Below, in pieces: positions 3,012 through 62,115 of a stretch of 64,000 bases of DNA. Source of the DNA: Chlorokybus atmophyticus (taxonomy: Eukaryota; Plantae; Mesostigma and Chlorokybus algae); contig RHPI01001616.1 of assembly GCA_009103225.1 (NCBI GenBank), forward strand, positions 188,640-252,639. Direction: 5' to 3'. The notes under the pieces are model-generated. The model saw only the letters and a program-made list of their open reading frames with translations. It did not search any database and was not told the origin of the DNA. The position numbers and the translations under genes were made by a program. The stretch's first letter is position 1, and the number at the start of each line of letters is the position of its first letter.

Positions 3012-3637
3012 ATGAAGCGTGTGATCCGCGATGCGGAGGGCTCATACTTGCTTAGGTGCCCGATCGGGCGCAACCACACGGCCACTCTTGACGCGCTCCG
3101 GACAAGATGTACGGCGTGCTGAAGGAGGCGTATACGGTCAACAGGGAGTAGACGGGTTTACGCCTTTTTAGGTGGGAGAGTCACGTGGCTGGCGCTTGGA
3201 TGTTGTAGCGTCGGAGGCGGGGCGTAATACACAACTGTATTTGGACGTGGCGGTCATAGCGCAGACGGTCCATTCGGAAAGGGGGGGGGGGNNNNNNNNN
3301 NNNNNNNNNNNNNNNNNNNNNNNNNNNNNNNNNNNNNNNNNNNNNNNNNNNNNNNNNNNNNNNNNNNNNNNNNNNNNNNNNNNNNNNNNNNNNNNNNNNN
3401 NNNNNNNNNNNNNNNNNNNNNNNNNNNNNNNGGGAGGGGGGGGCGAAAAATGGAGTCGGTAAAACGGAAGTAATACGACGTCCATCCCTTCGTCGACACT
3501 TTAGTCCCATTGGCGGTGGAAATCTACATTACACTCGGTCAAGCGCTCGCCGACATTATCGACACGTGCACACGGAGGACACCGGCGGCGGGTAACATTC
3601 TGCTGCGCCAACTGTGTGGTTGTCTAACCATGTATTA
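3012..3637 (+). mobile_element. Degenerate 3' part of a non-LTR retrotransposon with restriction-like endonuclease (CRE/R2-type)
   Basis: Motifs in order: zinc-knuckle remnant SYLLRCPIGRNHTATLDAL(R)DKMYGVLKEA, then RLDVVASEAGRNTQLYLDVAV (PD-D/E), then after the gap ESVKRK*Y...FVDTLVPLAVEIYITLG. Frameshifts and stops; N-gap 3292-3431. Confidence 0.6.
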
Positions 3638-15979: not shown

Positions 15980-17187
15980 GTTGGGTGCTCTTTTTGGTGA
16001 AGTAGTTTTTGCTGAGAATCCTCCCCGGGCTACTGATGTTGTATATAGCCAGGTGCTTGCGTGATAGATTGTTCAGGACTGGCGCAAACTGTTGGTCGGG
16101 TGTAGTAGGGCAGGATGCTTGGGCATTGGATTGGGATTGAACAGACAGGATATAGTTGAGGTCGTGCATAAATTGCGCGCAACATTGGCAATGTGCAGCA
16201 TGCCGGGCTAAGCAATGTCTGTGCTTTTGCCCGTACCCTTGCGCTTGTGAGTGCTGTAGCATGGCAGTTCTTATGGTATTTTCTTGACAATAGCTTCTAA
16301 GGATGCCTGTGCAAACAATCTGGGACAGCAGGACTGATAGTGTGGATTGGACTCGTGTACAAATGTGCGGAAGTTGCTATGACACAAATCAGTAAAGCAG
16401 AAAAATCGTAGATATGGTGTAAATATGTAAGCCACCAGCTCCATAGCGAACAGCAATCCACTGTCTGAGTGGACATTCCAAAGCGTTGAGCATCCTCCAC
16501 CTACACGAATGATACTGCAACAGGCATAGCACCCTACCACTCCCACCTTGCGTTCCCAAAGTATGCATGCTAGCATGCATACTTTGGGAGTAGCAAGGCT
16601 CACATCGTCACGTCATCAGTACTGCAATGTTTGACGATGTGGTTACAGGCGTAGGTCGTGGGCCAACCTGGGACTGCGCACGTGTATATGTATCTGTGTA
16701 GGAGGATGTGCGCGCAGAGTTGGACGCCAATGTATGCCATGTATGCGGCGGGGATGTGGACAGTCCACTCAGCATATATACGGAAAGCTATAGGCCTGTT
16801 CACCTAGTACTTATCAACCTTGCGCACGCACAAGCAGTAACAGCCTTGAGCAGACTGCAGCGCACAAGTCCCTGCCTGTACTTGGACAAGAAAGGACTGA
16901 CATGCGGCGATCGAGCCATAGAGCAAGGCGATGATTCAACATCTACATACTATCTTGAGTTCAAACTTAGCCATGCAGTCCTTGTCATAGTCAATGCCCT
17001 CCTTATCCAAATGTTCCATTTTATTCGCTGCTGGTTTTAACCTTTTGTGCACACACACAAAAAGTACAACGTTTCAACCATTGACTACCAAGGACTCTGG
17101 CCCCGCACACCGTGCCAGGCAAACACAAGGCCTATCCGGTAACACCTCGCCATGCACACAGTAGGCCAAAATCTGCCTTGAGACACA

Positions 17188-17230
17188 TGCACACACACAC
17201 ACACGCACACACACAGAGAGAGAGAGAGAC

Positions 17231-17291
<61 letters not shown>

Positions 17292-17538
17292 AAGAGAGCG
17301 AGAGAGCGAGAGCGCGAGAGAGCGAGAGCGCGAGAGAGCGAGAGCGCGAGAGCGAGAGCGCGAGCGCGAGCGCGAGAGCGAGAGCGCGAGAGCGAGAGCG
17401 AGAGCGAGAGCGAGAGCAAGCGAGAGCGAGAGCAAGCGAGAGCGCGAGAGCGCGAGAGAGCGAGAGCGAGAGAGCGAGAGCAAGAGCGAGAGCGAGAGCG
17501 AGAGCGAGAGCGAGAGAGAGCGAGAGAGAGCGAGAGAG

Positions 17539-17569
<31 letters not shown>
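17188..17569. repeat. Compound microsatellite (AC)n-(AG)n-(GAGAGC/GAGC)n-(AG)n
   Basis: Directly visible ~380-bp low-complexity tract. Confidence 0.95.
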
Positions 17570-17575
<6 letters not shown>

Positions 17576-19893
17576 GTTTGTAGCCTACATACGGACATTG
17601 CGCATTGTCAAGTCTTCAATAACTCCAAGTCTCCAACTACAATAGTCAAAGGTTCAACACAACAACGCCGCATTTTCGCCCCACATTGCTGGATATTGGT
17701 GTTTCACATATCAGACTGCAATGCTGATTAGAACATTGTACTGCACACTTTGCTTTACTGCAACATACGCAATATGTTGTGTTTCTCTGCTGCTGCTGGC
17801 AATCAATAGTGCGCGCGCGCGTGTGTACAAGAATCTCCAAAACTGTGTGTGTGTGTGTGTGTGTGTGTCTCCAAAGCACATAAGATATGCACAGGCACAT
17901 CGGTTGTGTAGTAGTAGGATGGGTGGGGAGGGNNNNNNNNNNNNNNNNNNNNNNNNNNNNNNNNNNNNNNNNNNNNNNNNNNNNNNNNNNNNNNNNNNNN
18001 NNNNNNNNNNNNNNNNNNNNNNNNNNNNNNNNNNNNNNNNNNNNNNGGGGGGGGGCACGTGCGTTTGTGGACGTATGCGTGCCTGTGTGCGCACATTTGC
18101 GTATAAATGTGCATGCGTGCATGCGTGTGTATGGGTGCGTGCATGTATGCGTGTGCCACACGCAGTGCGCGTGGCTGTAAATTGCATCTGCATATATACA
18201 ACAGTTCGAGCCAAATCTCGGCTTTTCAAAGACCCAACATACTCTCTGGTGCAATCGCAGGGAGAAGATGGGTCCGTTACCACCCGCTCCGTGCGTCACG
18301 ACGTTCTTGTCAGCTGCGATGGCGAACGCTCCGCTGTTTGGAAGTGCGTGTTGAAGAAACAACCAGGCAAGCATTGATAAAGTCACTTTGGTATCATGTA
18401 ATGTAGTGCGAGCATATATACACCAGTGACATTGTACTGATGACAAAATGAGGCCATGTGCATGTGTGTGTACGTGCGAGCGTGCGCGCGTGCGTAAATC
18501 TTCAAGACTATTGTGTGTGTGTCCGAAACACATTTGTGTGTGTAGTGAGAACTACTACGACATGTACATGGTTTGTGCTGGTTCCACACTGTCATGCTAT
18601 TCCACACAACACCTCATCGAAACATACCGTAATGCACGCCGACACACCCGCTCCCATCCACACATATGTACACACATACGCTCCCATACACCTACACGCC
18701 CACGCACTGCATCGCTTTCTTTATGCACACATGCATGACTAACAGGGGAGGCAGTAGGGGTAGGTGTAGAGTAAGGGGTAGAGTCAACCCGGTGGTCGTG
18801 TATGCAGCATTGAGGTGCGTGGTGCCTGCTGCATGCAGTTCATTGCTCTCTGATGCATGTTGGCATTGGCACCTTTGCATATGCAATGCACCGCCACTGA
18901 CAGTCATCCAACGAGCCTGCACTCACACGCCAACACAACGACTAACCAGCGCACGTGTGGGCATGTACGGACCTCTTGCTTGTATGTCCGACGGGGCCGG
19001 CTAGAAGAAGCATAGCAAGCAGCCATAGTATCAGCCCGATGGTGAGTTATACATGATGAGTCGTGAATGCTTGTTGAGGTGCATGTCACCCGCATTGTCC
19101 GCACACCATGCATGCTGGCACAGCAGCATACCCCTTATGTACAACCACAGCACTATGCAGCAGCGTCCTTGTGTGTAGTGCTGTGTGCAGTCTGGAGAGT
19201 GTTCTTTTTGTCCACATGCAGGGTGTCTCATTAACGTTCAGCATCAGCAAGCAAGCCAGCGCGTCACAGAATGTGACTCTCACATGCTGATGTCATTTCA
19301 CTAAGTGGTTGTGGCTAGCAGTAAGCATGCACCGTAATGGTGTTCATGACAAAATGCACACTGCTACGTGGGTGACCGCATTTATCTACTACATGACATG
19401 TCTGGTGTGCAATACTACACATACTTTATTACAGCCATTTACCACCATACCTCAGCTGCAAACTACAATGCACAACATGTGCTTCACTCCTTTCCGGCTC
19501 CAGAATAGCAACTGGTGCTGCAGATTGGCTGCTTTGTACGCGGCAAGCCATAGCTCCTCTGAGCGGCAAGGAACACTAGCGCAAAGGGCATTGCTGCGTA
19601 TAACACACATCAATGCATAATGTGTCTCATGTGTGGCAAGTAGGCGCACAATGTCTGCACACCAACAGCTAGCACTGTCACACAATGCCGCAATGTCACG
19701 CAATATAACGAAGCGCAGCAGTATGCGACTCGCAGTGACCTCACTTACGCTTAACTAGCCAAAGAATAACAATCTCCCACCCACCGCACTGTTTTAGCGT
19801 ACTCTACTCCTCTACCGCGCTTCTCGATTTATCCATTGGACTGTAGCTCCTTCATGATACCATCAATCACCCAACAAGCCTCCTACCCGCTCT

Positions 19894-22800: not shown

Positions 22801-23411
22801 TGTTTGAAGAGCATGTGAAGTTGAGGCAGCGCTGAGGATGAGTGTCAAACATGCTCAAGTGCAGAGATTGTAAAACTAACAAATCTGAAACTTGTATGTA
22901 CGTAAGCCTGGCTGCGGTGCGTTAAGGTTTGGTGAGCTAGGGTTTAAAAGTGCATGACTAAGCGTGAGGCCNNNNNNNNNNNNNNNNNNNNNNNNNNNNN
23001 NNNNNNNNNNNNNNNNNNNNNNNNNNNNNNNNNNNNNNNNNNNNNNNNNNNNNNNNNNNNNNNNNNNNNNNNNNNNNNNNNNNNNNNNNNNNNNNNNNNN
23101 NNNNNNNNNNNNNNNNNNNNNNNNNNNNNNNNNNNNNGGGAAGGGGAGGAGTGAGAGAGCAGCAAAGCGGGGAAGCTCGGCTGCTCACTTCGTATGCTAG
23201 ATTTGACAGCTGGCGCCTCTGCCGCAGCGGTTGACACGCTGGCGTGGCTTGCCCCCGCCGCCGCCCCCGCCATACAGACCACAGTGCTGCGGAGTGTGGC
23301 AGCAGGTGCAGCAGCAGCTCGAAGGCGCTGACCTGCAAAGCTGCTAGCCTTCGCCGAGTGCCCGTTCGCCTGCACTGCCACACCCGTCACAGCAGCAGTC
23401 GCCGAAGCCAT
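19894..23411 (-). CDS. SHMT: Serine hydroxymethyltransferase, plastid-type (SHM3-like), 8 exons
   Basis: Transit peptide MASATAAV..; [23 protein letters not shown]|[49 protein letters not shown] (PLP lysine), [27 protein letters not shown]. Confidence 0.97.
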
Positions 23412-26800: not shown

Positions 26801-27200
26801 TCGCATGTGGCAGGTTTTGGACTTTGTATCATTGGACGAGGATGGCAGCGTCACGCACTGGCGGCTGGCAAATGTCAAAGTCAATAGGGGAGAAAAGGTT
26901 GTCTAATGTGGTTCTCGAAAACCACAGAGCGGCTCAGCACACACAAACACGCAGACATGCTTGCATGCACGCATGCATGCACTTGCACGCATGCGCACGC
27001 GTAAGTATGCGCATGCACATGTGCAAGCATACACCTGCCAACCCATAGATGTGTGCACGCGCGCATGCGCACGCACGCATGCAGTAACGTTCCATTGGCC
27101 CTTGTCGCAGGGCAAGGGGCTGTCAAAGAAGCAGCGCGAGCGCATCCTTGATATTCCAGTGTCGGCGATACAGCGCGTGAACCTGCATCTGGACTTTTGA
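23802..27200 (+). CDS. RimP/DUF150-like organellar ribosome maturation factor
   Basis: Targeting-peptide-like MLARAAAALARR; acidic linker; RLDKLSDQYGSPTLEEIS, YSVEVSSPGAER, LERFKALPMRVNY, THWRLANVK, GKGLSKKQRE..VNLHLDF*. Confidence 0.88.
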
Positions 27201-28130
27201 CTGAGGATCGAACAGCTGCTTATTTGACAGCAGTTGACTGCGAGTTGATGTGAATATGCGTTGCTTGTGCCTTCACAAGAGAACAGGTTTTTCATTCCAC
27301 ATGTCACACAGCGTCTGCCATGCAACTTGCCATATTCCATCTTCCTCGTTTGGAAACAAGATGAAGCAGCAGTCATTGCAAATCTATAGCCAAATGTTCC
27401 AGTTTTAACAGGCACCATGTGACTGTTTCATGTAGTATAGAGAAAGTGTTTCAATGGCATAACGGGGTGTTAGCAATAGTGTAGGCGGGTAGTGAGTTTG
27501 ATAGGGTAGCATAGCCCGGTGGTGAAGTGTGACAGTGTTATGCTTGTTGTGTGCTCGTTGGATGATTGTAATGGTCATTATGCACATGCATAATGACCAT
27601 CACATGCACAATCATCCAGAGCCAGTGCCTGAGCACATCCCTCGCGCGTTGTGTGTTATGGCCAATTGTCACCAATATGTTACCATTTCGTTGGTGCAAA
27701 TTGCTGCACAAGCGCCTTGGTAGGGGGTGTCTCTCAGCAACTGTGCTTTCCTGCATGTTGTCGATAATTTTCTGCATACAGCCTTCACCCATAGCAGCTT
27801 TGACACAAGTTCAGCGGTTGATGAGCGCATGCTGAAGTGAAAGCCTTGAGCGCCGCAGTGACACATCTGGTAATGTAACAATTGGTGACACCCTAGCCCA
27901 TCACGCCTTTACTTTTGTTGCAATCTGTTACAATGCACAACAAGCACCGCACTGACATTATGAATACGTGACGTCAAGCAATGCACATTACACACCAGAC
28001 CTCATTGCGCCACGTTGGACATGAGCATGCACAGTCATCACACATGCGTCTACACAATGCTTGTCATACACTCTCCGCCCACCATGATACACCAAAATGT
28101 ACACATTGATATCTGCTGACCCTTTCCTTG

Positions 28131-30377
28131 CTACCTGACTGACTCCGCTTCGCGCATCGGTTGTGCCCTGTCAGCAACACAAATCAGTGACACAAGAAAA
28201 AGTTGACATTCATCAACAACAGTTGCTTGGCATAATTAGATAACATGGGATGCAACATTGTCAACGCACGTCTCACGCGCAAGTGCTTCCAGCTCTGCTT
28301 CTAACCCTTTACACGCCGCCGATATGTCCATGTTCTTCTGTACAAGTTCCATCCACTCTGCCTCAAGACTTCTCAACTGTTGCCCCACTTTCACCTGCAA
28401 ACAACAAACACCTTGCACACATTACAACAAAGGAGAAGTCCAACAAGCAGCTTGCTTGCAGTAAGAGTCTCAGCAAGGGTGAAGAGTGTTGCTGTGTTAC
28501 ATCCGACAAAGACCACACTTGCCTGCTCTGCTTTTCGTTGCCGGTTCAACTGATCAATGCTCTGTTTGTTCTCCTTCAACAATCGTGACAACCTGTTGAA
28601 GCAGCAGGATATGTTCACATGCAAGGGATGCTACAATCTCATAAGTGTTTGAAGCTCTCCAGTGCACAAACCTGGCGTTGGTGGCTTCAAGGTGCTGTAT
28701 ATGCGCTCGCCATGCATTGGGACCAAACTTGACTGCCAGCTCCAAGTTTATTAGCCTGCAACCAGCATGATATTGTATCAACCAGCAGCGTGTACACCCA
28801 GGCGTACGCACACACACACGAACGTGCACATGGACACAGAGAGCGCGTATAAGAGAGTTGGTACTATACACACTGGTTACGATGGGATGAATGTTCAATG
28901 GAATAATGACATCACTCAGAAAGGAACCACAACGCACATCACGCATCTATTCACACATTGCGCATGTACATGTCCTGTATATCCAGCGCAACTTTCACAC
29001 AACAAATACACAACCACTCGCACGCACCCCTTCCCACCTGTTGAACTGGTGCTCTAGCTGCGCGTGCGAGTTGGCAATGGCGGCCTTCCACGCGGCGGGG
29101 TCGGCACGCTTGTTGACGGGCGGGGCCTCCGCGGCGTAGCGCCCCTCATCCATGCCCACCAAAGGAAGACCTTGAGACACGCGGAGAAACTCATTTGCCA
29201 GGAGGGGGAAACGCTGGTGGGGATGAGGGGTGAGGTAGTGGCGAATGTTACACATGGCAGTGTAGGATGGCGACGCAGTTATTGGTATACTGTGGGAACA
29301 GACACTATACCAGGCGGTGTACATGACGTTTGGTGATTAAGTATCAAGTAGCAAACAGCAAAGTGTGGTGTAGTTAAGCGTGGCGATGTGTAGCATACTG
29401 AAACACCAAGTGTACTTTGTTGCAGTGTGTAGAGTTTTAAGCAAAGTTTTCGTAATGTACTTATTATGTGGACTACGCTGCGCCACACTACAAGGACAAT
29501 CAAGTGTAGTGTAGTGTGGTGTGGTGCGGTGTAGTGCAGTGTAGTACAGTATAGTATAGCGTAGTGGTCTTGTGTAAACGTCAGCAAACAGCGTATAGTT
29601 GTACGCGTCCTTCAACCTCAAAGGTAGCTTGATAATGATAATGTGTGCAAAAACGCACACGGTTCTTAAGACACGCGCGCGCACGTACGATGTGTGCAGC
29701 ATGCATTGGTTTCACTCACATCGAAATGCAGCTCGGGCGGGGGCGGCAGCTCCTTCAGGTAATCGGCCGGCTGCTTGGTGCTGCGCTTAAGCTCCTGCTC
29801 GATCAACTTGTCCACCTGCGTGACGTGTTATGCATGTGGTCTTCAATTGGTCAACTGTTAGAACAACTGTCAGAACAACAACTGTCAGAACAAACAACTA
29901 TAGCAGATCTTGCTGACAGAAAAGCTACATGCTTCAATTGCAGTAGCTTACAGTAATAACTGCTTGTTTGTGAATAGTTCATAGCTATCTCCTTCACTCT
30001 CAACACTGAATGTGTGGCATAGACATACAGATGCTCTCCGTAGAGGCAAGCAACTTGCATGCGTCCCATAGAGGAACATGCGTGTTCACAACCTAAACAC
30101 TCGACAACGTGAGCAGCTTTCAAGGCTGCATGTTGCCGAAGATGTATGCTTACTACTCATGGCAAAAAGCTATCAGCAACAAACTGACAAAGCTAAGAAT
30201 AACACAGCATAGAACACAGAACGTGACACTTGCCTGTATTTTCATGTCAGCGTACTGGCCATCGACATAGGGCAGGGCGTCAATCTCCTCAGCCACGGCG
30301 CCGCCCCGCCACCTCGGCCCAAGATCCTCCTTGTCCGTCAACGCAAGCGGCGGAGCCTTTGCCTCCACTCCAGCCAT
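28131..30377 (-). CDS. SPF27: Pre-mRNA splicing factor SPF27/BCAS2/MOS4
   Basis: IDALPYVD, VDKLIEQELKRS, WKAAIANSHAQLEHQFNR|LINLELAVKFGPNAW, IDQLNRQRKAEQ, LEAEWMELVQKNMDISAAC. Confidence 0.95.
29495..29567. repeat. Degenerate (GTGTA)n pentamer satellite in SPF27 intron
   Basis: gtgtagtgtagtgtggtgtggtgcggtgtagtgcagtgtagtacagtatagtatag. Confidence 0.8.
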
Positions 30378-30654: not shown

Positions 30655-34051
<3,397 letters not shown>

Positions 34052-35113
34052 TAGCGAGTTTAGTGTTGTGCAGGAGTGCTTTGGCATGCCTGGTGCGAGT
34101 TCCAATTGCTGTTCAGGGCAATGATGGCGTACTTATGGGCATATGTTGTGGCGGGCAACAGTCACAACATGCTGAGTGGCTGTTGGACATTACCATGTAC
34201 ACAATTGTGCTCTGGGTTCATGTACACTAATGCTGTGGTACAAGGCATGAAGTATGCTGTGTGCTGTCCACGCGTCCATGTGCGCATTGCATGGATCATT
34301 TAAGTATATGCACCACCTACATGAATGCACAGAGTTGAAGTGCACGTAGCTTACGCACAAACTTGCATATACCTGTGCGATTGGTATGCAGCAACAGCAA
34401 GGTAGGTTGCATGCCAGAAAGGTAGTCATTGAGTTGGACATTGGCACTACGCTTTTGCAACCAGAGGCAAAGCTGCACAGAGTGCGTGACATCACACCCT
34501 GGCGTATATGAAAGTTAACTTCACATAGCTGTTGCACCAGGTTGTCAAGCTTTGTCAATGATGCAACCACACGCACATGGTTCCTACATGCATTACACTA
34601 TGCCTGGAGCGTTCTGCACACTCCACAGGATCACATTGCAGTTGTAATCAGCAATGTGCATGCACTCTGATTGGCATATGCACGCATACTGCCAACAGCT
34701 GGCTAACTGGGCTACTTATAAAACAATATCTCTAAGAAGTGTCCGTGCTCACAATGCTGGTAGAGTCCCTCAACACTTTACTGTACTGTATGAAACCTAC
34801 ACAGGCTGCTGCGCACGGCCCAACCACATCTGGGGCATGTGTGCATTGATTCCCAACATACAACGTCAAGGCTTACAGGCTTCCAATCGCTCTCACGTCC
34901 AGCCTTGAGCCAAAGCAGAAAGTAGGGGCAATCCTCTCCATTGCGCTAGCTGCTCACGGCCCCTACTATCCCTAACCATTGTGTGGGCATGTGTCCGGAG
35001 CAGTCCATCTCATGCCTCACATGGCTCACATGCTCAAAGGCTGATGGATGGGTGGAGGAGGAAGAGAGGGACAGAGAGGGTGTGCGTGTCTGCTGGTGGT
35101 GAAGCACCAACCA

Positions 35114-35593: not shown

Positions 35594-37115
35594 ATGGCGG
35601 CGGCATCGGCGGCGGCGGCGCCAGGTGAGGAGGCCGAGGCGGTGGTGACGTGGGAGGATCAGAAGGCGATCAATGCGTTCGGGCAGCTGAACAGCCGCCT
35701 GCAGGAGCTCATAGAAGACATCGCTGTAAGATAAACAACAGGCACTGTTTTCGCTCTTTGACTTGTGGTGTGAGCTTTCCGCACAAATTGTTACAAGGTT
35801 ATATCTTGTGTGTACGCAGATTAGTTATGTTGCTTTGTGTACTTAATGTTCGTTGCAATGTGCGGCGTGCAAAGTGCTTTGAGCATGCATTTTGCGCAGC
35901 TACTTTGAAGTTTTGCGTGAAGTACCTTGTGATGTTCACATTGCACGACACGGCCATATGAGCATCACAAGGTATTTCATGCCTGTAATTTCATTTTGTG
36001 CTACATGCGGCTATTCTTGGTATAGTGTTGCACGTGATCACTTCAAGGAAGTGCTGTGAAAGCTTCAGTTTCATCACTACCGGCCAGAGCTCGCGTGTGC
36101 GTTGTACTCTGCTGCGCTGTATACTTTTCTTTTGTTGGTTTCTTGCCACAAACAGCCACATGCACATGCACACGCGTATGCAACTGAACTCGCTCTCACA
36201 CCAGGACAACCACCTAAGCATACGCGTAGCGCACACTTACTCTCACACTTGCGCACACGCGCACATGCACAAACACGCGCGCGTGCGTGCGCACAGTAAC
36301 AGGCACAGGCATGTACACGCAAGCGTGCACGCGTGCGCATGCACAGATTTTCGCTCTTGGCGCATGCACGCATGCATGCGTGCGCGTGCATGCATGCGCG
36401 CGCATGCAGGCATGCACGCCCGCTTGCGCACCCACATGTGTGCTCGCAGGCCAAGAGGAGGGAGATTGAGGCATTGGACGATGCCAGCAACGAGCTCATG
36501 CTTGCGGACGAGGGCGAGGGTGTGAGACTCCTCGTGGGGGAAGCCTTTGTCACTGTAAGCAAGAATGATGCTCAATGAATCATTGTTGACTGAATGCGCA
36601 TACACTGCACCATACATGTTACTACTTTGCTCTCCCAGTGAAATATGCCATTTCTTAACACTGTTGCAGCTGTATTTTGCAACTGATGTCCTATGCTGTG
36701 CTACCATTCTCCACATAACTACATACCATCAATTGGAGCTATACTAACCATCATGCACGCATGTTTCATTCTGAGGTACAGTATCATAATTCATATCACG
36801 TTGGATCAACTCAGTATACTGGATTCGTATCGGTGATTACACGGCATTGTGTCACTTGATGCAAGCTGTTACGCACTGTACCATGCTGCCAAAAGCTATG
36901 TTTACCTGCTTTGTAGCATACCATGTTGTACTATGGCATGCTGTCATTGACTTGATACAGTGCACACGCAATATGATGCATTTGCCACATAACACTGACT
37001 CATAGCGCTATTTTACATCACAATGTCACAGTTGCGAACACATCCACGCACGCAGGCGCACGTGCACGTGCACGCTAGTGCGCACGCTAGCTTGCATATG
37101 TGTGCGCACGGGCAT

Positions 37116-37148
<33 letters not shown>

Positions 37149-37338
37149 CGTACACACACACACTCCCCAGGTCAGCGCCGACGCTGCCGAGTCGCGTTTG
37201 TCCGAGCTTAAGGAGGAGGCTGAGCGCGAGGTCGCGCGTATGGAGGAGGAGGCCGAGGGGGCCCGGGAGCGCATGGCGCAGTACAAGCACAGGCTGTACG
37301 CCAAGTTCAAGGACGCTATCAACCTGGAGGCGGACTGA
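35594..37338 (+). CDS. PFDN4: Prefoldin subunit 4, 3 exons
   Basis: VTWEDQKAINAFGQLN..|AKRREIEALDDASNELMLADE..VGEAFVT|..KHRLYAKFKDAINLEAD*. Confidence 0.95.
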
Positions 37339-38078
37339 TTTGGGGGGGGGGCAAGGAGGGTGGGTGTGGGTGTGGGTGTGGTTGGAGTGTTGGAAAGCAC
37401 AACTGCTGTTGCTTCATAGGAATCACACATACTGGGGAATACCTAAATTGAAATGCTGCGATGATGTGCCTCAGTCTGTGCTGGTGTATATGCTCTGCGT
37501 GTGCGTGTTAGACAGAGCATGAGCTGTTAGGTAGTAAGCTGGCTGAAGGGATCTGCTAAGGGGTAGTCTTGCATGTCAATGGACAAGCATAGCACATTAC
37601 ATTTGTGACTTGGACTTTGCACGCCGTAGCACACATGCATGCTGGTGTGACTAACGGGGTAGGGAGTTGGTGTACAAGACAAGCGCGACAATGTTGTAGG
37701 CATGCATTTCAACGCCATGCATCACATGCAGTCAATCTCACGCACCTCCATGCCGCACACATGCATGCGACCACCGGGCTCAATCTGTGTTAGGTAGGGT
37801 TAAGAGTAGCCCGGTGGTGAGTTAGTGTGGTGAAGTGTTGGCATGAGATTGCATGTGCCGTGTGCTGCTGATGTAGCATACTAGTCCTTATACACATGCG
37901 CGCTGTAGAGGACGCGGCAACTAGCACGTAGCACGCCACTTGCCTTGTGAAATGTACCACACCACCTACTGTATCAGCATCATGTGGGTTTACCCATTGC
38001 AAACACAAACATACCCATGCAAACACACATGTAGCATACTCTGTATCCACCACTTCCTTTTCCTGCGCACTGCATAAC

Positions 38079-39062: not shown

Positions 39063-41393
39063 NNNNNNNNNNNNNNNNNNNNNNNNNNNNNNNNNNNNNN
39101 NNNNNNNNNNNNNNNNNNNNNNNNNNNNNNNNNNNNNNNNNNNNNNNNNNNNNNNNNNNNNNNNNNNNNNNNNNNNNNNNNNNNNNNNNNNNNNNNNNNN
39201 NNNNNNNNNNNNNNNNNNNNNNNNNNNNNNNNNNNNNNNNACCCCACTCTCCCCACCCTCCACCCTCATCCCGTTCTCCCTCTTCTCCAGCAACAGAGAT
39301 GTTCTCTTGCCCTCTGATTCGTGTAATAGATCCAAAGGTCCGAACCGGTGCGGCAGGAGTAAGGGGAGTGTCGAGGGTGACTTGTTGTACACGAGGAAGC
39401 GGAGGTGCTGGGAGGAGGAGAGCTCGCCAACAAACTGGCGGCAGTGGCCGCAGGGGGCGTGGGAGACGGCCACCACACGGAGGCCCTGAAGGGAGAGAGA
39501 AGGGAAAGATTGTTGTTGTGATTATTATTGATGTTGTCAGTGTTGGTATTAGTAATGACGGTGATGATTTTGGTCTGTTCAGAGAGCAAGATGGACTGAT
39601 GCATCTGCGGTGCGTGAGGATTTGTCAGGAGGAAAGTTGTAGTGATGGACGATAGACTGTCGACACGCGCGCGCACGGTCACACATGCCCACTCTCTAAC
39701 TGCCCACCAACACACTGTGCGTGCGTGTGTGCGCGGGGGGGGGGGGNGGGGGACATGTACGTGCGCAGATACACCCGCGGCAAATGCATGCGCCATGCGC
39801 TTGCGAATATGCGCACGCACGCATGTGATAGCGAGCAAGCGTGCGGTCGAGTGAGCGTGCATGAGCGCGCGCGCGCGCATGCACAAGCACATGTCGCACA
39901 TATCCTCTCATGCTACAGTCACCGCGACAACCGAAACATCACAACAAGGCAACAGCAACCGCACCACCACAGACCGTATCACACACAGCATACTGTCATT
40001 TCATAACACTTCACCTCTTCACCATGAATGAGCGCGTTCTGCACGAGGAACTGCTCCGCGTGCACCGAGTTGCTGAGCGGGAGGCCCGGAAACTCCAGAT
40101 TCACGCCCACGTACAAGCGGCCGCTGTCGCCCAAACCCACCGCACCCACCCTAATAGTGTGGACAGTGACACCATGAGTAATGATACTGTAACACTAACA
40201 TGATGATGTCTTGGTCACACTGTTACTGGCAGTAGTTACATGCAGGTGTGATGTAGTCAGCAGCTGTGACAATGACTGTTATGTTATCAGCATAGAGCAA
40301 TTTGACCGTGTTGCCGTTGTGTAGGAGCACAAACGGTGCAATGATAACCCATAACTTACACAGCAAAAAGACAACATAAAAACACAACATAGAAGAGACA
40401 AACTGCTGGTAGCACAGAATAGAGTGCGTGAAACAGGACCCGTCACCAAAATCATTCACAAAACACAAAATCGGCAATGGACACACAACACAACTGAGTT
40501 TATGTTCTGCAGTTGTGAAGACTGGTGCAGTACACACGTAAGACGAAAAGCAATAACACGCAACAATCCATATAGAACGAGGCACTATAGACTGCAACTG
40601 TTGCATCGGCTAATACCGCTTGGCACATGTCAACTATACTTTCACCCTGTGCAAGAGAATGTTCAATTAATAAAGTTTGCAGGGGCAAATGTGACAGGAT
40701 GATACTGCTCGCGGGTACACGGATGGTTGCCAAGCCGGCAGCCACCAAGGTAAGTAACCGTAGTTTATTGAGATGATGATAAACATAATGTAAAGAGGAA
40801 AACTATCATTCACCACAATGCAGTACCGATACCGATGCAATATCCACACGCACATGGCAATGCATAATTGAAATACAATCCTTTTGAAGTCGTCAGGGCT
40901 GATTTTGCTCTTTGGATCTTGCCCTTTGATTTTACTGACTGTTTGCGTTTGGCCAGCATTGTTGTTTTTACTTTATCAAGCATTGACTAATTCACCACCA
41001 TGAGTATGTTCAAACGACAGTAATTACTGTACTAAACATAGCCACGTAGCGCAATTGTGCTTGAACATAGCGACGCAATTGTGAATTGGCACAAATGCAT
41101 ATGTGCGCGTGCGTGTGCCTCATACCACACCTGAAATTGCTGATTGGCGGCCTGGCTAGCGCCTGTGCGTCCGGCAGCATCGCCAGCAGAAGCTTCTCAA
41201 TGCCAGTATAGCCTTCTCCCCTATCACCATCATCATCATCAACACCATCAATGCCATTATCTATACCATCAGTCTCAAACCCTAACGCCGCCGCCCTGGC
41301 CTTCGCCTCCGCCGCCTCCAGCATGAACACACCCGGCACGCCAGGCAGCCCGTTGACCCCGCCCCCGCCGCCGCCACCATCCCGGCCAGTCAT
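38432..41393 (-). CDS. CDA: Cytidine deaminase, plant homodimeric (CDA1) type; part of the CDS lies in the N-gap
   Basis: [10 protein letters not shown]|[34 protein letters not shown] (40150-40023)|[25 protein letters not shown]|[18 protein letters not shown]. Confidence 0.93.
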
Positions 41394-44700: not shown

Positions 44701-46179
44701 GACGCAGGACAAAGCCATCGCCTGGTTCAAGAGCTGGCTTGGGTTTCGCCGGCCGCTGTTCGCGCGACTCTCGACCAAACACTCCAAGATGGAAGTCTCT
44801 GGAAGCATCGACTTTAGCGGGATCGTGTACACAGACAAGCCTGTGCGCGCAAAGGTACGAGCTGCATTGGCACTGACTACATTATGCGAGCTCGTGCAGG
44901 TGTCATGCTCCATGCGGTGTATTGTCAAACACTATCTGCATTCACTTGTTGTCCATGACCACACATAACAGGCTTGTCAATGCATGTTGGCGTTTATAAG
45001 CAGTGTCGGTTCCTCACACCTACCAACAGATCCACCAACTCACAAATATGTATGGGCTTGGTCTTGATGGTCATACAAGCCGTATCCTGTACATCTGTCT
45101 TGCCTTCTCCTTTTGCAGCAGGCTATTGATGCTCACAAAACCAAATCTGTGGTTGTGCGATGCAGCTGGACGTGACGACGCCTCTTTGTCGGACAGTCCT
45201 TGCGAAGGTCAATCCTTTGCTTTCAGATGCGGTCTCCGTGGACCCGCACTGGGGCGAGCAGATGCAGGTGTTGGTGAAGCCCGAGGGTGGGATGATCCCC
45301 TCCACCATGTACAAGGCCAGGATCCTGCCCATGCGGCTGGTCATCGAGCAGGGCAGTCTCATCAGCAACGCCCTCAACATGCTCAATGCCAAGTCGGCCG
45401 CACACGGGCCCACCACAACTATGATGACGTCCGCAGTCCACGCAGAGTATCACTCACAATCAGGACTTGTAACTTCCTCTCGCCTGGACGTGCGCGTGGC
45501 AGGTATGTTGGATGCATCTCATGATGGATGCATCGCATGTTCATGACCTGGTTGTGCATTGCAGTAACCAGGACTGAGTTGCTGTTAATTGTGGTGCAGA
45601 TGCGGTGCAGTTGGCGGCGTGGGGTGAGACCGACTTGAACACGAGGAAGATCAGCATGACGCTGGGAGTGCCAGCGTACTCGCTGCGGAGATGGACGGGC
45701 GTGAAGAACTTGCCCGAGGACTACGTCCTTCAGGTAAGGAATACATGCCCCTTACCTTGTCAAGTTGTACTTTTTCTCTAGTGACCGCTCAGCCCGACAC
45801 ACATTGTACAGAGCATCAAATGGTGTATGAGTGTATAGGTGCATCTGGGTGGGACTTTGGACCAGTACCGTGTGGACTGGGGAAAAGCAGCAAAGCAGGT
45901 GCTGGTTACTCCTTGCATGCTTTCATTATCTTGATGCACAGCATAACCAACCCTACAAAGCACATACGGTTGGGCACAACTGCCGGCGAATAACTACTTA
46001 CACAACTCCGTTTTACTTGCCAGATTGCTGGACTTGTGCTTAGAGGCGATGAGCGTCCGCGAAGTAACGACCTACTCGGGAACCTTCTCACTGCGGGAAA
46101 GATACTGGCGCCGTCCCTCGAGGAAGGCACGAAGGCACCCCCGCCCACTCTGCCTCACCCTTGGGAACAGGAGTACTAG
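41794..46179 (+). CDS. Uncharacterised AsmA/TamB-like protein, probably plastid-envelope; 11 exons
   Basis: All 11 GT-AG exons join in one frame: transit-peptide-like start, polyGly, TM helix (LQALLFAAAGLALFIAAIPALLSSPW), LNNTIPGSIKVEKATISW, beta-rich body, LAKVNPLL, SRLDVRVA|DAVQLAAWGETDL..MTLGVP..LPEDYVLQ|VHLGGTLD..IAGL..PPPTLPHPWE. The family assignment is from motif recall. Confidence 0.75.
41906..42260. repeat. Array of CAAGCATGCTTG/CATGCTTG palindromic units in intron 1 of the AsmA-like gene
   Basis: More than 10 (G/C)CATGCTTG or CAAGCATG units in ~350 bp. Confidence 0.75.
44005..44160. repeat. Degenerate (CTATG)n satellite in intron
   Basis: ctatgctatgctctgctatgctgtgctatgctag..ctatgccatgctatgctaagccaagctatg. 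Confidence 0.8.
44220..44482 (+). ncRNA. Long imperfect intronic fold-back; candidate pre-miRNA/hpRNA (or old MITE)
   Basis: 84/83-nt arms (44266-44349; 44355-44437) around a 5-nt loop, plus a 17-bp basal helix (44220-44236 with 44466-44482). Symmetric mismatches, G:U pairs, a single bulge. Confidence 0.55.
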
Positions 46180-47313
46180 AGAGGTGCAGCATCTGGTCTA
46201 TTGCTTGCACACATGCATGCTGTGGTGAGGTGCACTTAGAGAGAGAAGAGCACAGGTGGCGGTGGTGTTAGCATTGCGGACAGTTGTATAGCTGTTTCTT
46301 GGGGGGTCTAAATGGACCTTGCTGTTAGTTAGATAGGAAGTTTCTGGGCATGTAAAGCACACAGATGGAGAATTGAGTTGCATGGCAGTACGACGGTGTC
46401 ACGCATATCTTTCCTGTTCCTCGGGAGCATTTGGAGCATGCGATGTTGGACCATGCCATGCACATGTGTACACACATGCAGTTGTAGTTGTCTGTGAAAA
46501 GCCATTCCTATCGTTGGCGCAGCAAACACCGGGTTTATACTGAGGTTTATTGTGTGGTTCTGTGCATGCACTTCGTGGCACACATGATTGTTTTGTTCTG
46601 CGCCAGCCCACTGTAGGCACAGAGATTGGCGTGTACACGTGTATGCAAAAACAGGGTAGAGTAGGTTACAACAAACCCTCAGCAACAACAATGGGTCCCC
46701 AGAGCTCCTAAGCTGTTTTGCTTAACTCTTCGCTCACAGATACAAGCACAAGCACGAGAAACAGTGCACAAGAGAAGGTGCTAGTGAGTGTCGCAGACAG
46801 GCACAGGAGATGTGCGTGCATAACTTGTAAGCTGTGGGACAAGTTGCTGCATCCTGTAGACCAACATCATAAGCGTCTGGCACAGCATGCCTTGGTAGTG
46901 ACATTCTTCCGTATGCCATCAAAGCAACCTGTACATGTATGCCAGCACAATGCGGAAGCAGGCAACCTGTTTTAGCCGTAACTGTTATTGAGCGTCACAG
47001 GGCAGGTGATGGTCAACTCATTTGCACATCGCAACGACTCTCATGTCGGGTCATACGATCCATGAGCTGCACACAGTGCATCATGCGACAAAGGGTCCCC
47101 TGTCACAAACAACATGGCAGGGACATCAACGAATCCATTGCACACAGCAGGGGCGCAGACTGCCAAGAGAGAAGCAGGGCGGCGGGTGGAGAGAGAGCGA
47201 GAAAGCAGAGGGAGGGGGAGTCCGTCTGCTTTGTGCTGCTGCCACAACTACAGCCACACCGGTGCCTAACTGTGGGGACTCTACTTGTGTACAGGTAACT
47301 ACGCATGCATGTT

Positions 47314-47375
47314 GACTAACGGGGCAAGGGCTTAGCGAAAGTAGCTACCTAATTTGTATAGGTAGCCCGGTGGTG
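47314..47375. other. Recurrent 3'-flank element GACTAAC(R)GGGG-N~35-TAGCCCGGTGGTG (other copies at ~18737, 27460, 37649-37819, 55084)
   Basis: Exact TAGCCCGGTGGTG at 27512, 37807 and 47363, each preceded by TAACGGGG. Variants at 18737-18798 and, reverse-oriented, 55084-55151. Confidence 0.65.
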
Positions 47376-47849
47376 TAAGAAGTTGTTTGCTAGCGTGTGC
47401 AAGTGTGCGTGTGTGTGTGCATGTCATGTTCACAATGCAATGGGGTCACATGCATAACATTGCATATATGTTACACAGTCATGGGGCAAACGACACAAAC
47501 AGTTCGGGGGAACACTGGTGACCAGAGCAACTCCTCACCGTTGACAGGTATATGCATACATGGAACAAGTGTCCAATCGACACATCCTGCCTGTTTGACA
47601 GTAAATGCAGCTGTGCCGCAATCTGCGCAACCCTCAACTCAGAATGCAGCAAAAGGCGTTGTTGCTGGCTCGACTCTCTAGCGAAGGCTACCCCACTTCA
47701 CCCAGCATGAGACAGTGACCCTGCTGTGCCGGCTTCAGCCAGGACAGGGTACAAACATTGCTGCTCACTCTGGTTGGTCCCTCTCAGCGAATGACTTGAT
47801 GTTGCTCCCAGTAGCTGTTGCCCCAACAACATACAATATGTACACAACT

Positions 47850-49159
47850 CTACCGTCCGCGGCCACGACCACGGCCACGGCCACGACCCCTGCCCCTTCC
47901 AACAGGCCGGCCTGCAAGCAAACAAACACTTCAGATCACTCGCACACGCGCGCGCACCAAACAACATGCGAGAATCATACACGCATCTCAACACTTACCA
48001 GGTGCTTCTTTCTTTGGCTTGATCTTGGGTGTATCATCGATGAGCAGCGTGTCCAAGTTGATGCTGTCCGGGAGAATGTAGTAGCGGATGTTGCTGCCGC
48101 GCACGCTGAGGTGGTCTAGAGATATCGGGTTCTTGCCTTTGGGTGTAAGCTTGACTGTTTTCAAGTGCGTGTTCATGCTGATGTCCACACCTGAAAACAC
48201 ACGCGCACATGTAAGGAAGAAGAAAGACGTGTACAAGAGAAGTAGCCATAGTAAACCACCTTGACGCAAGCAACTCACCCATTATCGTCCCGTGCACAAC
48301 TGTGCCATTTTTGAGCTCGATTACAACTGTCTCATTGTTCAGCTTCATGAGAAACCTGCAAGAAAGCGCAGTGTGAGATTGAAGCCATTGGCATAAGCGC
48401 GATGCACGCAAAGCTTTGATATCCTGTACACAACAAATGTGCAACTCCCACGCATGCACTGGTTGCAGCCTGCATGTCTCCGCGGGTAGAGACGCATATA
48501 CCAATAGAAGCATGCAAGAAGAAATACACACACCGCTCAACCAGTGCAAGATCGTTGCTGTTGACCAAGTGCGAATAGGCTGTCTGACTACTAATCACAA
48601 TTGCATGCACTGCTGCTTTATGGTAGAAGCAAAGTCCACCAGCAAGTGCACTCTGGCAGTAACTAACCGAAAGCTACAGTGAGTAATACTTGCAGAAAAA
48701 CGGCTTTGTGCCAGTCATGAGGCAGCCAACACACAAGCGCAAACGGGCGACGGCAGGTTGCAGCCTATTGACAACAACATGTCAAGCTTTGCAACCACCC
48801 TTTCATACATCAACAGAGACCCCACGCACCAGTGCTGCAGCCGACGCGCGTTAGCGCCACATGTAATGAAGCACCATGCCATGCGCAAATGCAGATGTCG
48901 TAAACAGTACAAATATGCAAACACAGAATCAATCAACAAGCATCTAAGGGCCCACCCTGACAGCTGTGAAGATGCAAGCATGTCACACAGGCACACCAAT
49001 AAGTCAAGTTTATCAGCAAAACGCTTGCGACAACAGTGCTTATTAGTCATCAGATTGCGCAGCTGGGGGGAATGTAACCCAATGCCTGATGTCAAACTAA
49101 AAGCGCTTTTGCATGCACACAATCTGGTTGGAAAAGCTTTCTCACCTGACAAGCTTCAT
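47850..49159 (-). CDS. SmD1: Small nuclear ribonucleoprotein Sm D1, 4 coding exons
   Basis: MKLV|[26 protein letters not shown]|[34 protein letters not shown]..|[14 protein letters not shown]. Confidence 0.97.
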
Positions 49160-52500: not shown

Positions 52501-54513
52501 AGTGTTAGTCAAGCAGATTGACCTGCCATTCAAGGGACCGTGTTCACATGCGGCGCGATGACGATTGTGTTTGTGTCGTCCTCTCCCCAGGTTGAGAACC
52601 GCAAGCAGACGCGGTTGCAGCTGCTGCGTTTCAACCCGTACACGGGCGCGCGCAGCTTGCTCCTGGAGGAGCGGAACGACACGTGGATTAACCTGCACGA
52701 CTGCTTCACCCCCTTGCACAAGGCCCCCGGCGAGCTGGCCAACGGCTTCGTCTGGGCCAGCGAACGCACGGGATTCCGACACTTGTACGCCTACACCGCG
52801 GCCGGCAAGCTGCTTGGAAATCTAACGGCCGGCGATTGGATGGTGGAAAGCGTGGCAGGTGAGGACACGTGTTCTGCTTGCGTGTGCGCATGCACGCGAG
52901 TTTGCGCGCGCGTGCGTGTGTGCATGTTGTGTATTTGAATTAGAGTGTCTGTGTTGTGCGTGCAGGTTTGGATGAAGGAGCAGGGTTGATATACTTCATG
53001 GGCACTTGCGACAGCGCGCTCGAGACGCACTTGTACTCTTGTCCCCTCACACCTTGCACTTCAGGCACGCCTCCCCCACCACAGCGATTGACGCAGGTTT
53101 GCGCCCATTGCACGTACACATGTCACAACGATGGTTGCAGGCATGCGCACACCCATGCGCACAGGCACAGCGTGCATATGTGCTGCACATACGCACACGT
53201 GCACGTGGTGCAGTTGATTGGCAGGTATAACCTGGTTGCTTCTTGTGACAACGTGTGTTGGATGCACAGGGCAGTGGTCGACACGTGGTGATCGTGGACC
53301 ACGCGCTGCGCCGCTTTGTAGATGTGTACGATTCGTTGGGGCAGCCGCCGCTCGTCACGCTGCGCATGCTGGAAGACGGGCGCGAGGTTGTTCCCATTTT
53401 TGTACCCCAGACCCCCAACCCGCGCGCGTCACGCCTGCGGCTCGACCCGCCACGCCTCGTGTCCATACCCGCTGGTCGGCACGGCATTGTACTCTATGGG
53501 GCCGTCTACCGACCAGACACTGATGTCCACGGCCCAGGTGCATGATTGTTTTAGTTGTTGTCGTCGTTTTTCTTGTGGTGCTGTATTGTGGGGTTGAGTG
53601 TGACCATGAGTAGGAATTGGCTCATTATATGTGTTCCTGAGCAGGTCCCTACAAGACGATTGTTAGTGTATATGGGGGGCCCCGAGTCCAGGCAGTGTGC
53701 AACTCATGGATCATGACGGTGGACATGCGTGCGCAGTACTTGCGGTCTCGAGGCTATCTTGTTTGGAAGGTACACGCATAAGTTGCAGTTTGTCTGTGAG
53801 GGAGCCTATCTCATAAACTATGGTCAATCACTTACATGAATAGCATGCTGCTGTCACTGCATGCTCCTTGCTTGACACTTGCATTGACAAGGGCTGCTGG
53901 TGTCCGTGCTTGTGAACAATGTATGAGTAGCCCAACCCTTGTGTTTGTGGCTTGGCAGTTGGACAACAGGGGGAGTTCAAGAAGGGGTTTGTCATTTGAG
54001 AGCGCCATTAAGCACAAGTTGGGCAGCGTGGACGTGCACGACCAAGAGACAGGTCTGAAGTGGCTCCTTGAGCAGGAGAGGCTTGTGGACCCGACACGCA
54101 TGGGCGTGTACGGGTGGAGCTATGGCGGGTACCTTGCTGCAATGTGTCTATGCAAACTCCCGCACATGTTCAAGTCGGCCGTGGCGGGCGCGCCCGTCAC
54201 GTCGTGGGATGGGTACGACACCCACTACACCGAGCAGTACATGGGCACGCCGGGGGCCAACACGACGGCCTACCAGGAGAGCAGCGTCATGCATCACGTG
54301 GCCGCCATGCGCGGGAAGCTCCTCCTCGTGCATGGGATGATTGATGAGAACGTGCACTTCCGACACACGTGTCGACTCGTCAACGCCCTCAATGCCGCAT
54401 CCAAACACTACGAGCTTCTCACCTTCCCAGATGAGCGACACATGCCCCGCAGCCTGAAAGACCGCGTGTACATGGAAGAGCGCATGTTTGAGTTCTTCTC
54501 TAGAACAGTGTAA
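49545..54513 (+). CDS. Dipeptidyl peptidase IV/8/9-like S9B serine peptidase, 12 exons
   Basis: DPPIV beta-propeller motifs ([15 protein letters not shown]|[33 protein letters not shown]); catalytic [16 protein letters not shown] and FPDERH; [13 protein letters not shown]. Confidence 0.95.
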
Positions 54514-56078
54514 GTGAGTGCTGCGGGGAGAAAGAGCACTCTCTGTTTGAGAGCTACCTGTCTTGCAGCATTGAATGACATTGAATAAGTCGATTAGGTT
54601 GGTGTCGGTGTTAGTGCATGTGTGGCAGGCGGGGGGCAGCTTGGGCAGGGTCGCTGTTTGTGAGCCATTAGTGTCGTTGTTTATATATGTTGTCGTTGTT
54701 TAGTCAATTGTTGCTGTGTCAGCAGTAAAGCTCCTCGCCTCGCAACAGCTTCCCGCGATGCACACTTTGAAGTCTGTGGAACGTGTGTGGCCTACAGGTG
54801 GTTGCTCATCACACATTCCATCAGTGGTAGTGACTTTACATCCAACCGGCACCCATCACCACGATACATGCATGCAGATTGTACAGTATTAACTTTCAAC
54901 ATGTCATGTTGCGCGAAATGCAAGACTTGAATACAGGAGAGTCATCAGGCATGATTCAACAACTGTTCTTGCAGGCATGCCATTCGTGGGAATGTTTGCT
55001 GGGTACGGAGCTATTCTATGTGTACAGGATATGCGGTAGTTGTGGACATGCATGCACAAACAGCAGCATGCAAGCACGCTACACACCACCAGGGCTACAT
55101 ACACTGTTCATTCACGCATAATTCACTATACTACTTTAGACCTCCCTGTGTATGTGTGGCGCAGATAGATCTGCGCGTTTAAACCCGCCTGCAGCCAATG
55201 CAAGTCAGGCTGTAGCCTGGGCTCGCTGAGCACTGTTGGTCACATGGTATAAGCGGTGGTATTGTTGTGCCACGTGATAAAAATGGTGCAAGAAAGGGTG
55301 ACTGCGTGGCCGCAGCTATGTCGGTTGCTAAGGATGAACTCCACACCTGCAAATATCAAGGTTTTGGCTTCTACGACCGAACGCAGTTTTGCAAGTCTAG
55401 CTTGACGCAGCCAGTATGAGACTATTGCAAAAATAACTATGATTGGTGCAGGATGCGCCACTGGTCTTGTGGGGATGTTGTTTGTACGCGAACAAGAATA
55501 AACGTAGTGCATATGCTGAGTGGGGTCCCCCCCCCCCCCCCCCCCCNNNNNNNNNNNNNNNNNNNNNNNNNNNNNNNNNNNNNNNNNNNNNNNNNNNNNN
55601 NNNNNNNNNNNNNNNNNNNNNNNNNNNNNNNNNNNNNNNNNNNNNNNNNNNNNNNNNNNNNNNNNNNNNNNNNNNNNNNNNNNNNNNNNNNNNNNNNNNN
55701 NNNNNNNNNNNNNNNNNNNNNNNNNNNNNNNNNNNNNNNNNNNNNNNNNNNNNNNNNNNNNNNNNNNNNNNNNNNNNNNNNNNNNNNNNNNNNNNNNNNN
55801 NNNNNNNNNNNNNNNNNNNNNNNNNNNNNNNNNNNNNNNNNNNNNNNNNNNNNNNNNNNNNNNNNNNNNNNCCCCCCCCCCCCCCAGCAGACTGCTGGCT
55901 TATGCATAGGATGGCGCGCTCACCTGTGAGTGTGCTGTATATAGCAGCAAAAGCTGCTCAGGCAACTTATGGTACGTGCTGTACAACTCGTAATGTCCAA
56001 ATGTACACGAACTGTGGAGCCATAAAGGGCTAGGGCTTCAGGAGGCAAACATGGGCAGGAGAAAGACACTGAACAGGA

Positions 56079-61446: not shown

Positions 61447-62115
61447 NNNNNNNNNNNNNNNNNNNNNNNNNNNNNNNNNNNNNNNNNNNNNNNNNNNNNN
61501 NNNNNNNNNNNNNNNNNNNNNNNNNNNNNNNNNNNNNNNNNNNNNNNNNNNNNNNNNNNNNNNNNNNNNNNNNNNNNNNNNNNNNNNNNNNNNNNNNNNN
61601 NNNNNNNNNNNNNNNNNNNNNNNCCCCCCCCCCCCCCCCCTCCGGGGTTCGCCGCAGCACGCGGCACGGTTTCCGCATATGCATGCCATGGCAGTGACCA
61701 TTGCATAGTGTGCAATGCACAGAGGCTGCGGTGCTGTCATCTATGCGCATTTGACGCGACGCACAACATGGTGGACATCAAACCTAAGCATGCCGTCACC
61801 ATCATGATGCACGCTAATGATGTTCACCGTGATGTTTTAGAGCTTGTGCTTCTACGCAGTTCCGGTGTTGTCCACACTTTGTGCTTTCTATGAAGAGGCA
61901 GTTGCCACAGCTGCGTGATTATAACTGCTTGCAAGTGCTTGTGTGCATGCATGCATGCATACATTGAGCTTGCCTACAAATCCTGATGCTCTGCTTTATG
62001 GCCATCCCTGGCGATTTGCTACGAATGGCAATAATTTTATAGACGGTGCAACTTCAATGTGCTGGAACGCGAGTTGATTGTGTGTTGGTGCCGTTTGAGT
62101 TCCTGGGGCTTTCAG

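Follow-up and report, generated by a model that had tools for sequence, protein, structure and literature searches.

A two-box sequence element with an inverted-repeat layout in the spacers between convergent genes of Chlorokybus atmophyticus

The DNA analyzed here, a stretch of 64,000 nt from Chlorokybus atmophyticus that we refer to as the window, carries between 12 and 57 kb a row of genes in the order SIR (+), SHMT (-), RimP-like (+), SPF27 (-), NUP50-like (+), an open reading frame (ORF) (-), PFDN4 (+), CDA (-), AsmA-like (+), SmD1 (-), DPP (+), and CDT1 (-). Orientation alternates strictly along this part of the window, which is the part covered by our gene map, with exons searched singly; the alternation creates six convergent spacers about 10 kb apart (Table 1). 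The names that an earlier note on this DNA had given to SHMT, SPF27, CDA, SmD1, DPP, SIR, and PFDN4 were confirmed. For SmD1, the best protein matches are land-plant sequences with about 80 to 84% identity. Searches for Chlorokybus transcripts or proteins corresponding to the last exon of DPP, exon 2 of SmD1, and the last exon of PFDN4 found none, the best matches being 72% and 84% identical for the first two, with no match for PFDN4.

The window also contains six runs of N, some of them flanked by homopolymer C or G, and, in the region of the NUP50-like gene, 250 consecutive C residues, all of which are probably assembly artefacts. One of the gaps falls in the DPP/CDT1 spacer, so that the length of this spacer is uncertain. 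Beside another gap, in the SIR/SHMT spacer, a long GA/CT-type microsatellite leaves all frames open and produces spurious ORFs of 130 to 177 aa. Across introns and spacers, the non-coding DNA is dominated by alternating purine-pyrimidine words (CA/TG, CACGCA, CATGCATG) of the RY-element or Z-DNA-prone kind. Past the stop codons, the first 300 to 500 nt of the sense strand are rich in G+T (46100-46600, 47500-47850, 54400-54800, and 27800-28400), a skew that flips before the element described below is reached; these G+T-rich stretches may mark the extents of the 3' UTRs.

Table 1. Stop codons, units of the element, their distances from neighboring stop codons, and other features of the window
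Feature	Position in window	Strand	Composition or remarks
SIR, stop	15979	+	
SHMT, stop	19894	-	
RimP-like, stop	~26906	+	
SPF27, stop	28238 or lower	-	
NUP50/RanBD-like, stop	~34052	+	
PFDN4, stop	37338	+	
CDA, stop	~38432	-	
AsmA-like, stop	46179	+	
SmD1, stop	47850	-	
DPP, stop	54513	+	
CDT1, stop	~56224	-	
U1, AsmA-like/SmD1 spacer	47304..47375	-	exact box 1 47363-47375; 38-nt spacer; exact box 2 47314-47324; CATGCATG 47304-47311
U2, RimP-like/SPF27 spacer	27457..27524	-	box 1 27512-27524; 44-nt spacer; box 2 variant 27457-27467; no adjoining CATGCATG
U3, SIR/SHMT spacer	18725..18797	-	box 1 variant 18785-18797; 37-nt spacer; box 2 variant 18737-18747; RY 13-mer 18725-18737
U4, PFDN4/CDA spacer	37755..37819	-	box 1 37807-37819; 27-nt spacer; inverted box 1 37769-37781; RY 13-mer 37755-37767
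U5, PFDN4/CDA spacer	37629..37659	-	exact box 2 37649-37659; RY 13-mer 37629-37641; 147 nt from U4 box 1
U6, degenerate second copy, SIR/SHMT spacer	18940..19044	-	box 1 with 2 mismatches 19032-19044 (18.6 bits); 81-nt spacer; box 2-like 18940-18950
U7, DPP/CDT1 spacer, opposite orientation	55084..55160	+	box 1 with 1-nt insertion 55084-55097; right arm 55141-55160
Element in SIR/SHMT spacer			850 and ~1094 nt from SHMT stop (-); spacer holds assembly gap
Element in RimP-like/SPF27 spacer			~551 nt from RimP-like stop (+); up to 712 nt from SPF27 stop (-)
Element in PFDN4/CDA spacer			311 nt from PFDN4 stop (+, left); 613 nt from CDA stop (-, right)
Element in AsmA-like/SmD1 spacer			1135 nt from AsmA-like stop (+); 475 nt from SmD1 stop (-)
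Element in DPP/CDT1 spacer			571 nt from DPP stop (+); CDT1 side interrupted by assembly gap
Hairpin, SPF27 3' flank	27567-27604		18-bp arms
Microsatellite, SIR/SHMT spacer	17077-17650		GA/CT type
Run of C	32154-32403		NUP50-like gene region
Runs of N	3292-3431, 17933-18046, 22972-23137, 39063-39240, 55547-55871, 61447-61623		

A 13-nt word, TAGCCCGGTGGTG, is present without mismatch at 27512, 37807, and 47363 on the + strand, just as the earlier note had listed it, whereas about 0.001 copies are expected per strand; when up to two mismatches are allowed, the count rises to six matches versus 1.5 expected, a number that none of 100 dinucleotide shuffles got to. We name the boxes in the reverse-complement reading, in which box 1 is CACCACCGGGCTA and box 2 is CCCCGTTAGTC. 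Variants included, the 64-kb window holds seven strong copies of box 1, five on the minus and two on the plus strand, and a position weight matrix derived from them finds nothing else above 14 bits in the window, with 24 matches at 9 to 13 bits versus about 27 in simulations. Among the core-only matches that had been reported, the one at 37771 stands as a perfect 11-bp inverted core, while those at 16023 and 46527, with scores of 9 to 10 bits that are no commoner than in simulated sequence, are at chance level.

Box 2, which reads GACTAACGGGG on the + strand, is exact at 37649 and 47314 and has a one-mismatch copy at 18737, giving three matches versus 0.28 expected. The boxes are also ordered with respect to each other: four pairs of box 1 followed by box 2 (box 1 with up to three mismatches, box 2 with up to two, at most 200 nt apart) occur in the window versus 0.1 in simulation (30 simulated sequences), which places the bipartite arrangement described earlier far above chance. 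The gaps in these four pairs measure 38, 44, 37, and 147 nt; among the units, the gap is usually 27 to 44 nt, with 81 and 147 nt in two of them. The variant at 18737-18798 and the reverse copy at 55084-55151, the latter with a 1-nt insertion, likewise read as had been noted.

Box 1 can be lengthened upstream to (TAACT)CACCACCGGGCTA, so that it spans 13 to 18 bp, and the box 1 units at 37819 and 19044 have 17 of 18 nt in common, TAACTCACCA(C/T)CGGGCT. The strand carrying box 1 is poor in G between about -60 and +60, with 0 to 4 G per 20 nt versus about 5 expected. The boxes are the sole conserved columns, the inter-box spacers reaching 46% mean column identity, and the only 8-mers common at matching positions in the 1.1-kb contexts of five sites are box 1, box 2, and GCATG-type words. 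Exact boxes joined by unrelated spacers of 27 to 147 nt point to constraint on the boxes rather than to common descent of a repeat.

The two boxes are related to each other as an inverted repeat. Aligned with the reverse complement of box 1 and allowing a single gap, box 2 agrees with it at 9 of 12 positions, and is thus box 1 in inverted, diverged form. In U4, in the PFDN4/CDA spacer, the position of box 2 is even taken by a perfect inverted box 1, which is separated from box 1 by 27 nt and immediately followed by the RY element; the resulting inverted repeat is 11 nt long and 100% complementary. The right arm of the DPP unit is unlike box 2, yet complementary to box 1 plus its flank. The third part of the element, the RY word CATGCATG, follows box 2, or the inverted box 1, at a distance of no more than 10 nt in four of seven arms, an adjacency with a chance probability of about 1e-6 (binomial; background of 38 copies per 64 kb). 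The RY 13-mer, GCACACATGCATG, has four copies in the window; every one is on the + strand, and three belong to elements. Since GCATGC-type words are over-represented throughout the window (150 versus 65 expected from dinucleotide-preserving shuffles), we give the RY element no more than a supporting part. A separate structure, a near-perfect hairpin with arms that are 94% complementary, a 2-nt loop, and further pairing that extends to about 58 nt, lies 43 nt away from the U2 box 1, within the 3' flank of SPF27; no counterpart was seen at the other units.

All seven strong copies of box 1 fall within five convergent spacers (SIR/SHMT, RimP-like/SPF27, PFDN4/CDA, AsmA-like/SmD1, and DPP/CDT1), and none was found in the exons, introns, or divergent spacers mapped in the window. 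The earlier statement that the copies lie between genes, past stop codons, and outside divergent promoters thus holds for every strong copy in the mapped part. Five of the six mapped convergent spacers are occupied, with about one locus each. About 17% of the window consists of convergent spacers, so that the probability of five independent loci all falling there by chance is 0.17^5, or about 1e-4. The sixth convergent spacer (34.05-35.1 kb), whose right-hand gene is the ORF without a family match, has no canonical copy, only a weak box 2-like word. At 34693-34715 within this spacer, GGCTAACTGGGCTAC combines an inverted box 2-like core with the 3' half of box 1, at a chance-level score.

The distance from the element to the stop codon of either gene ranges from 290 to 1135 nt (Table 1), and the element lies roughly mid-spacer, without a fixed relation to the nearer gene. 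It had been proposed that the core is sense to an upstream gene and acts in an orientation-dependent way. The former is true, but the latter does not follow, the minus-strand gene being nearer at the SmD1 site and the plus-strand gene at the PFDN4/CDA site; as a motif placed anywhere in a convergent spacer reads in the sense direction of one gene lying upstream, the orientation argument alone carries no weight. The ORFs that adjoin the elements, considered as downstream genes (17646-18533, 26903-27418, and 37026-37430), were rejected, being low-complexity CA/GT sequence or crossing N gaps and having no family match. The three-part, position-specific element in convergent spacers is real, statistically robust, and apparently undescribed, on an evidence base of five loci in one 64-kb window with six assembly gaps.

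We tentatively propose, as a possible reading, that this is a protein-bound DNA element placed where converging transcription units meet, be it a terminator, a roadblock, or a boundary. In this scenario, a cis-acting DNA element of about 75 to 100 bp would mark the spacer between convergently transcribed genes, laid out as box 1 (13 to 18 bp), an unconstrained spacer (usually 27 to 44 bp, with few G on the strand of box 1), box 2, and the CATGCATG RY element. One or more sequence-specific DNA-binding proteins would occupy the two inverted half-sites, and the bound complex would serve as a roadblock or terminator for read-through polymerases arriving from both sides, or as a boundary. While we infer protein binding, action at the level of DNA, and a termination or boundary function, we place this reading first because of the long exact boxes beside free spacers, the inverted half-sites, the presence of about one locus per gene pair, and the occurrence of both orientations. 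One locus per spacer, in either orientation and without a fixed relation to the nearer gene, would also fit a shared DNA mark better than a signal for one mRNA. Several points count against it, besides the sample of five loci in one 64-kb window. The spacing of the half-sites varies (27, 37, 38, 44, 81, and 147 nt), as would not be expected of a single rigid dimer; arm pairing is better on the G-rich strand by way of G.U pairs, which hints at structure at the RNA level; and the sixth convergent spacer lacks a canonical copy.

The main rival is an RNA hairpin formed by the G-rich strand, in the order GCACACAUGCAUG, GACUAACGGGG, a G-rich loop, and UAGCCCGGUGGUG, which would act in 3'-end formation, in RNase III-type fail-safe termination, or in transcript stability. 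We consider this unlikely, and give the same low probability to its expected location within the 3' UTR, or shortly past it, of the gene to which the G-rich strand is sense (PFDN4, RimP-like, and AsmA-like, or CDT1 for the reversed copy). Within each gene pair, the element would then belong to the partner of the gene that the earlier note had assumed. Because of G.U pairs, pairing between the arms is indeed stronger on the G-rich than on the C-rich strand in five of six units. For the G-rich strand, the arm duplexes of the six units have energies of -13.2, -12.8, -18.4, -24.5, -9.5, and -17.3 kcal/mol, which are reached by 3.3%, 6.5%, 0.1%, 0%, 16%, and 0.1% of random 20-mers from the window, respectively; on the C-rich strand, the 5% level is attained in only two of six units (U4 and U7). 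Flanking sequence lengthens the stem in U3, U4, and U7: the arms of U3 together with their flanks reach -26.6 kcal/mol on the G-rich strand, and arm pairing in U7 amounts to -17 to -24 kcal/mol, a range reached by 0.1% of controls. The different right arm of U7 still pairs with box 1, resembling a compensatory change.

Folding of entire units speaks for the hairpin in some cases and against it in others. Fold z-scores are about -2.7 for U3 and U4 (versus shuffles, -2.68 for U3 at 18725-18810, and -2.7 and -3.1 for the two strands of U4 at 37752-37832) and weaker, -1.3 to -1.8, for U7. However, U1 and U2, which have canonical boxes at the usual spacing, fold no better than shuffles (z-scores of +0.79 and -0.12), a stem of about 10 bp that closes a loop of 27 to 44 nt is weak, and the CA-rich left and GT-rich right flanks pair readily regardless. 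The boxes are so nearly invariant that true covariation is absent, there being too few variable positions, and at the AsmA-like site the element lies 1.1 kb past the stop codon. The inverted repeats themselves are real; that they form a stable RNA hairpin is not established.

Quite unlikely, in our view, is a single-stranded RNA or co-transcriptional signal, CACCACCGGGCUA ... CCCCGUUAGUC, that would act in cleavage and polyadenylation or in Pol II termination from the 3' region of SHMT, SPF27, CDA, SmD1, and DPP. Box 1 does lie 475 to 1094 nt past the stop codons of these genes in a fixed orientation, within about 120 nt of sequence poor in G and rich in C and A, and in Klebsormidium, a streptophyte alga, the words most often found upstream of cleavage sites are C-rich (PMC1868727). 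Nevertheless, any convergent spacer satisfies the orientation rule by default, the signal would be missing from the partner gene in each pair apart from chance-level core-only matches (PFDN4 excepted), and the sense strand is GT-rich just past the stop codons, with the skew flipping ahead of the element. Plant and algal poly(A) signals, moreover, are 5 to 6 nt long, degenerate, and present at every gene (PMC1868727). These signals (FUE/NUE/CE, and UGUAA in chlorophytes) have the location in the gene 3' flank in common with the Chlorokybus element, but the latter is 13 to 18 nt long, exact, and bipartite, with one occurrence for each gene pair; a 13-nt exact signal in one gene per pair would be unlike any known poly(A) signal.

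A promoter module, consisting of the RY element, a MYB-type TAACGG core, and a downstream box, from which unannotated non-coding transcripts, antisense or intergenic, would start at gene 3' ends, is a highly unlikely explanation. We take CATGCATG to be the RY element and TAACGG to be the c-Myb/MSA core of plant promoters, the spacing of the boxes is promoter-like, and a CT-rich patch lies about 100 to 200 nt beyond U1. Downstream on both strands, however, there is no family-supported ORF, Rfam family, or tRNA, and GCATGC-type words, at 150 copies, are common across the whole window.

Least probable of all is a selfish or neutral repeat, in the form of tiny MITE-like elements with conserved termini or of SINE relics that insert in, or are tolerated only in, 3'-3' spacers: the boxes are imperfect inverted repeats resembling TIRs, and MITEs are often located near gene ends, but exact boxes with unrelated, unequal spacers are the opposite of what neutral decay leaves, the units show no target-site duplication, A/B-box pair, tRNA-like head, or longer common flank, and no copies lie in introns, though introns make up much of the non-coding DNA of the window. 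MITEs of the Stowaway and Tourist kinds are, as here, short, with imperfect terminal inverted repeats, and located near gene ends. Unlike them, the element has neither target-site duplications nor a conserved interior, and its arms are about 70 to 75% complementary yet individually exact between copies. A MITE or SINE with a homologous interior was rejected, as the spacers do not align and range from 27 to 147 nt in length; under all boundary definitions, direct repeats were found in at most three of six units and were 2 nt long only. ARAGORN detected no tRNA or tmRNA gene. On its other strand, box 1 resembles the A box consensus at 10 of 11 positions, and no B box was seen downstream of it. 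Unrelated spacers, the lack of target-site duplications, and the lack of tRNA features thus argue against the SINE or MITE relic that the earlier note had offered as an alternative.

Its other alternative, a branch-point and acceptor cassette, has to be abandoned as well. There is no pyrimidine tract, and the interval from ACTAAC to TAG is G/A-rich, unlike the real introns here, the SmD1 introns ending in a T-rich tract followed by CAG/G; a coding exon after the putative acceptor TAG was likewise rejected for want of a consistent reading frame. No known RNA family in Rfam 15 matched at the gathering score, and the matches with an E value of up to 1 were low-complexity and miRNA-like only, none of them at the sites. 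A metagenome scan for the bipartite pattern returned 0 matches, and in other algae, all of them distant species, the loci of DPP and SmD1 have neither the motif nor an excess of GCATGC. String searches of the literature for the motif led to unrelated primer and gene sequences only, and a search for conserved motifs between convergent genes together with termination in algae led to nothing relevant.

The proposed protein-bound mark has two analogs among known systems. Myb-type roadblock terminators of the Reb1, TTF-I, and Nsi1 kind, which serve yeast Pol II and Pol I, likewise consist of a high-information DNA site downstream of genes, and this site stops polymerases when protein is bound. The yeast Reb1 site, presumably TTACCCGG, has a CCCGG core in common with box 1, and box 2 has a Myb-type TAACGG core. 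Unlike the Reb1 type, the Chlorokybus element is bipartite and inverted, includes an RY element, and is specific to convergent Pol II gene spacers in a streptophyte alga. CTCF-type insulator sites of bilaterian animals are similarly about 14 bp long, of like composition, oriented, and placed between transcription units every 10 kb or so. The DPP copy contains CCACCAGGG, which we take to be the CTCF core, although this may be a coincidence, and we know of no CTCF outside bilaterians. By analogy with these systems, a dedicated factor might bind the inverted pair of 13-nt boxes together with the RY element in nearly every convergent spacer, terminating or insulating converging Pol II units as a CTCF- or Reb1-like punctuation system; we regard this more specific version as somewhat unlikely.

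How transcriptional collision is avoided at the convergent ends of closely packed eukaryotic genes is an open question, and, to our knowledge, no sequence-defined terminator or boundary element has been described in plants or algae beyond the degenerate poly(A) signals. Should the element instead act as an RNA hairpin, it would suggest an unusual 3'-end mechanism in an early-branching streptophyte. A long, exact motif that occurs once per convergent gene pair would provide a handle for genome-wide scanning, a bait for its binding factor, and a candidate for a compact bidirectional terminator in algal or plant constructs. If the protein-bound reading is true, this would be the first sequence-defined bidirectional terminator or boundary element in the green lineage.
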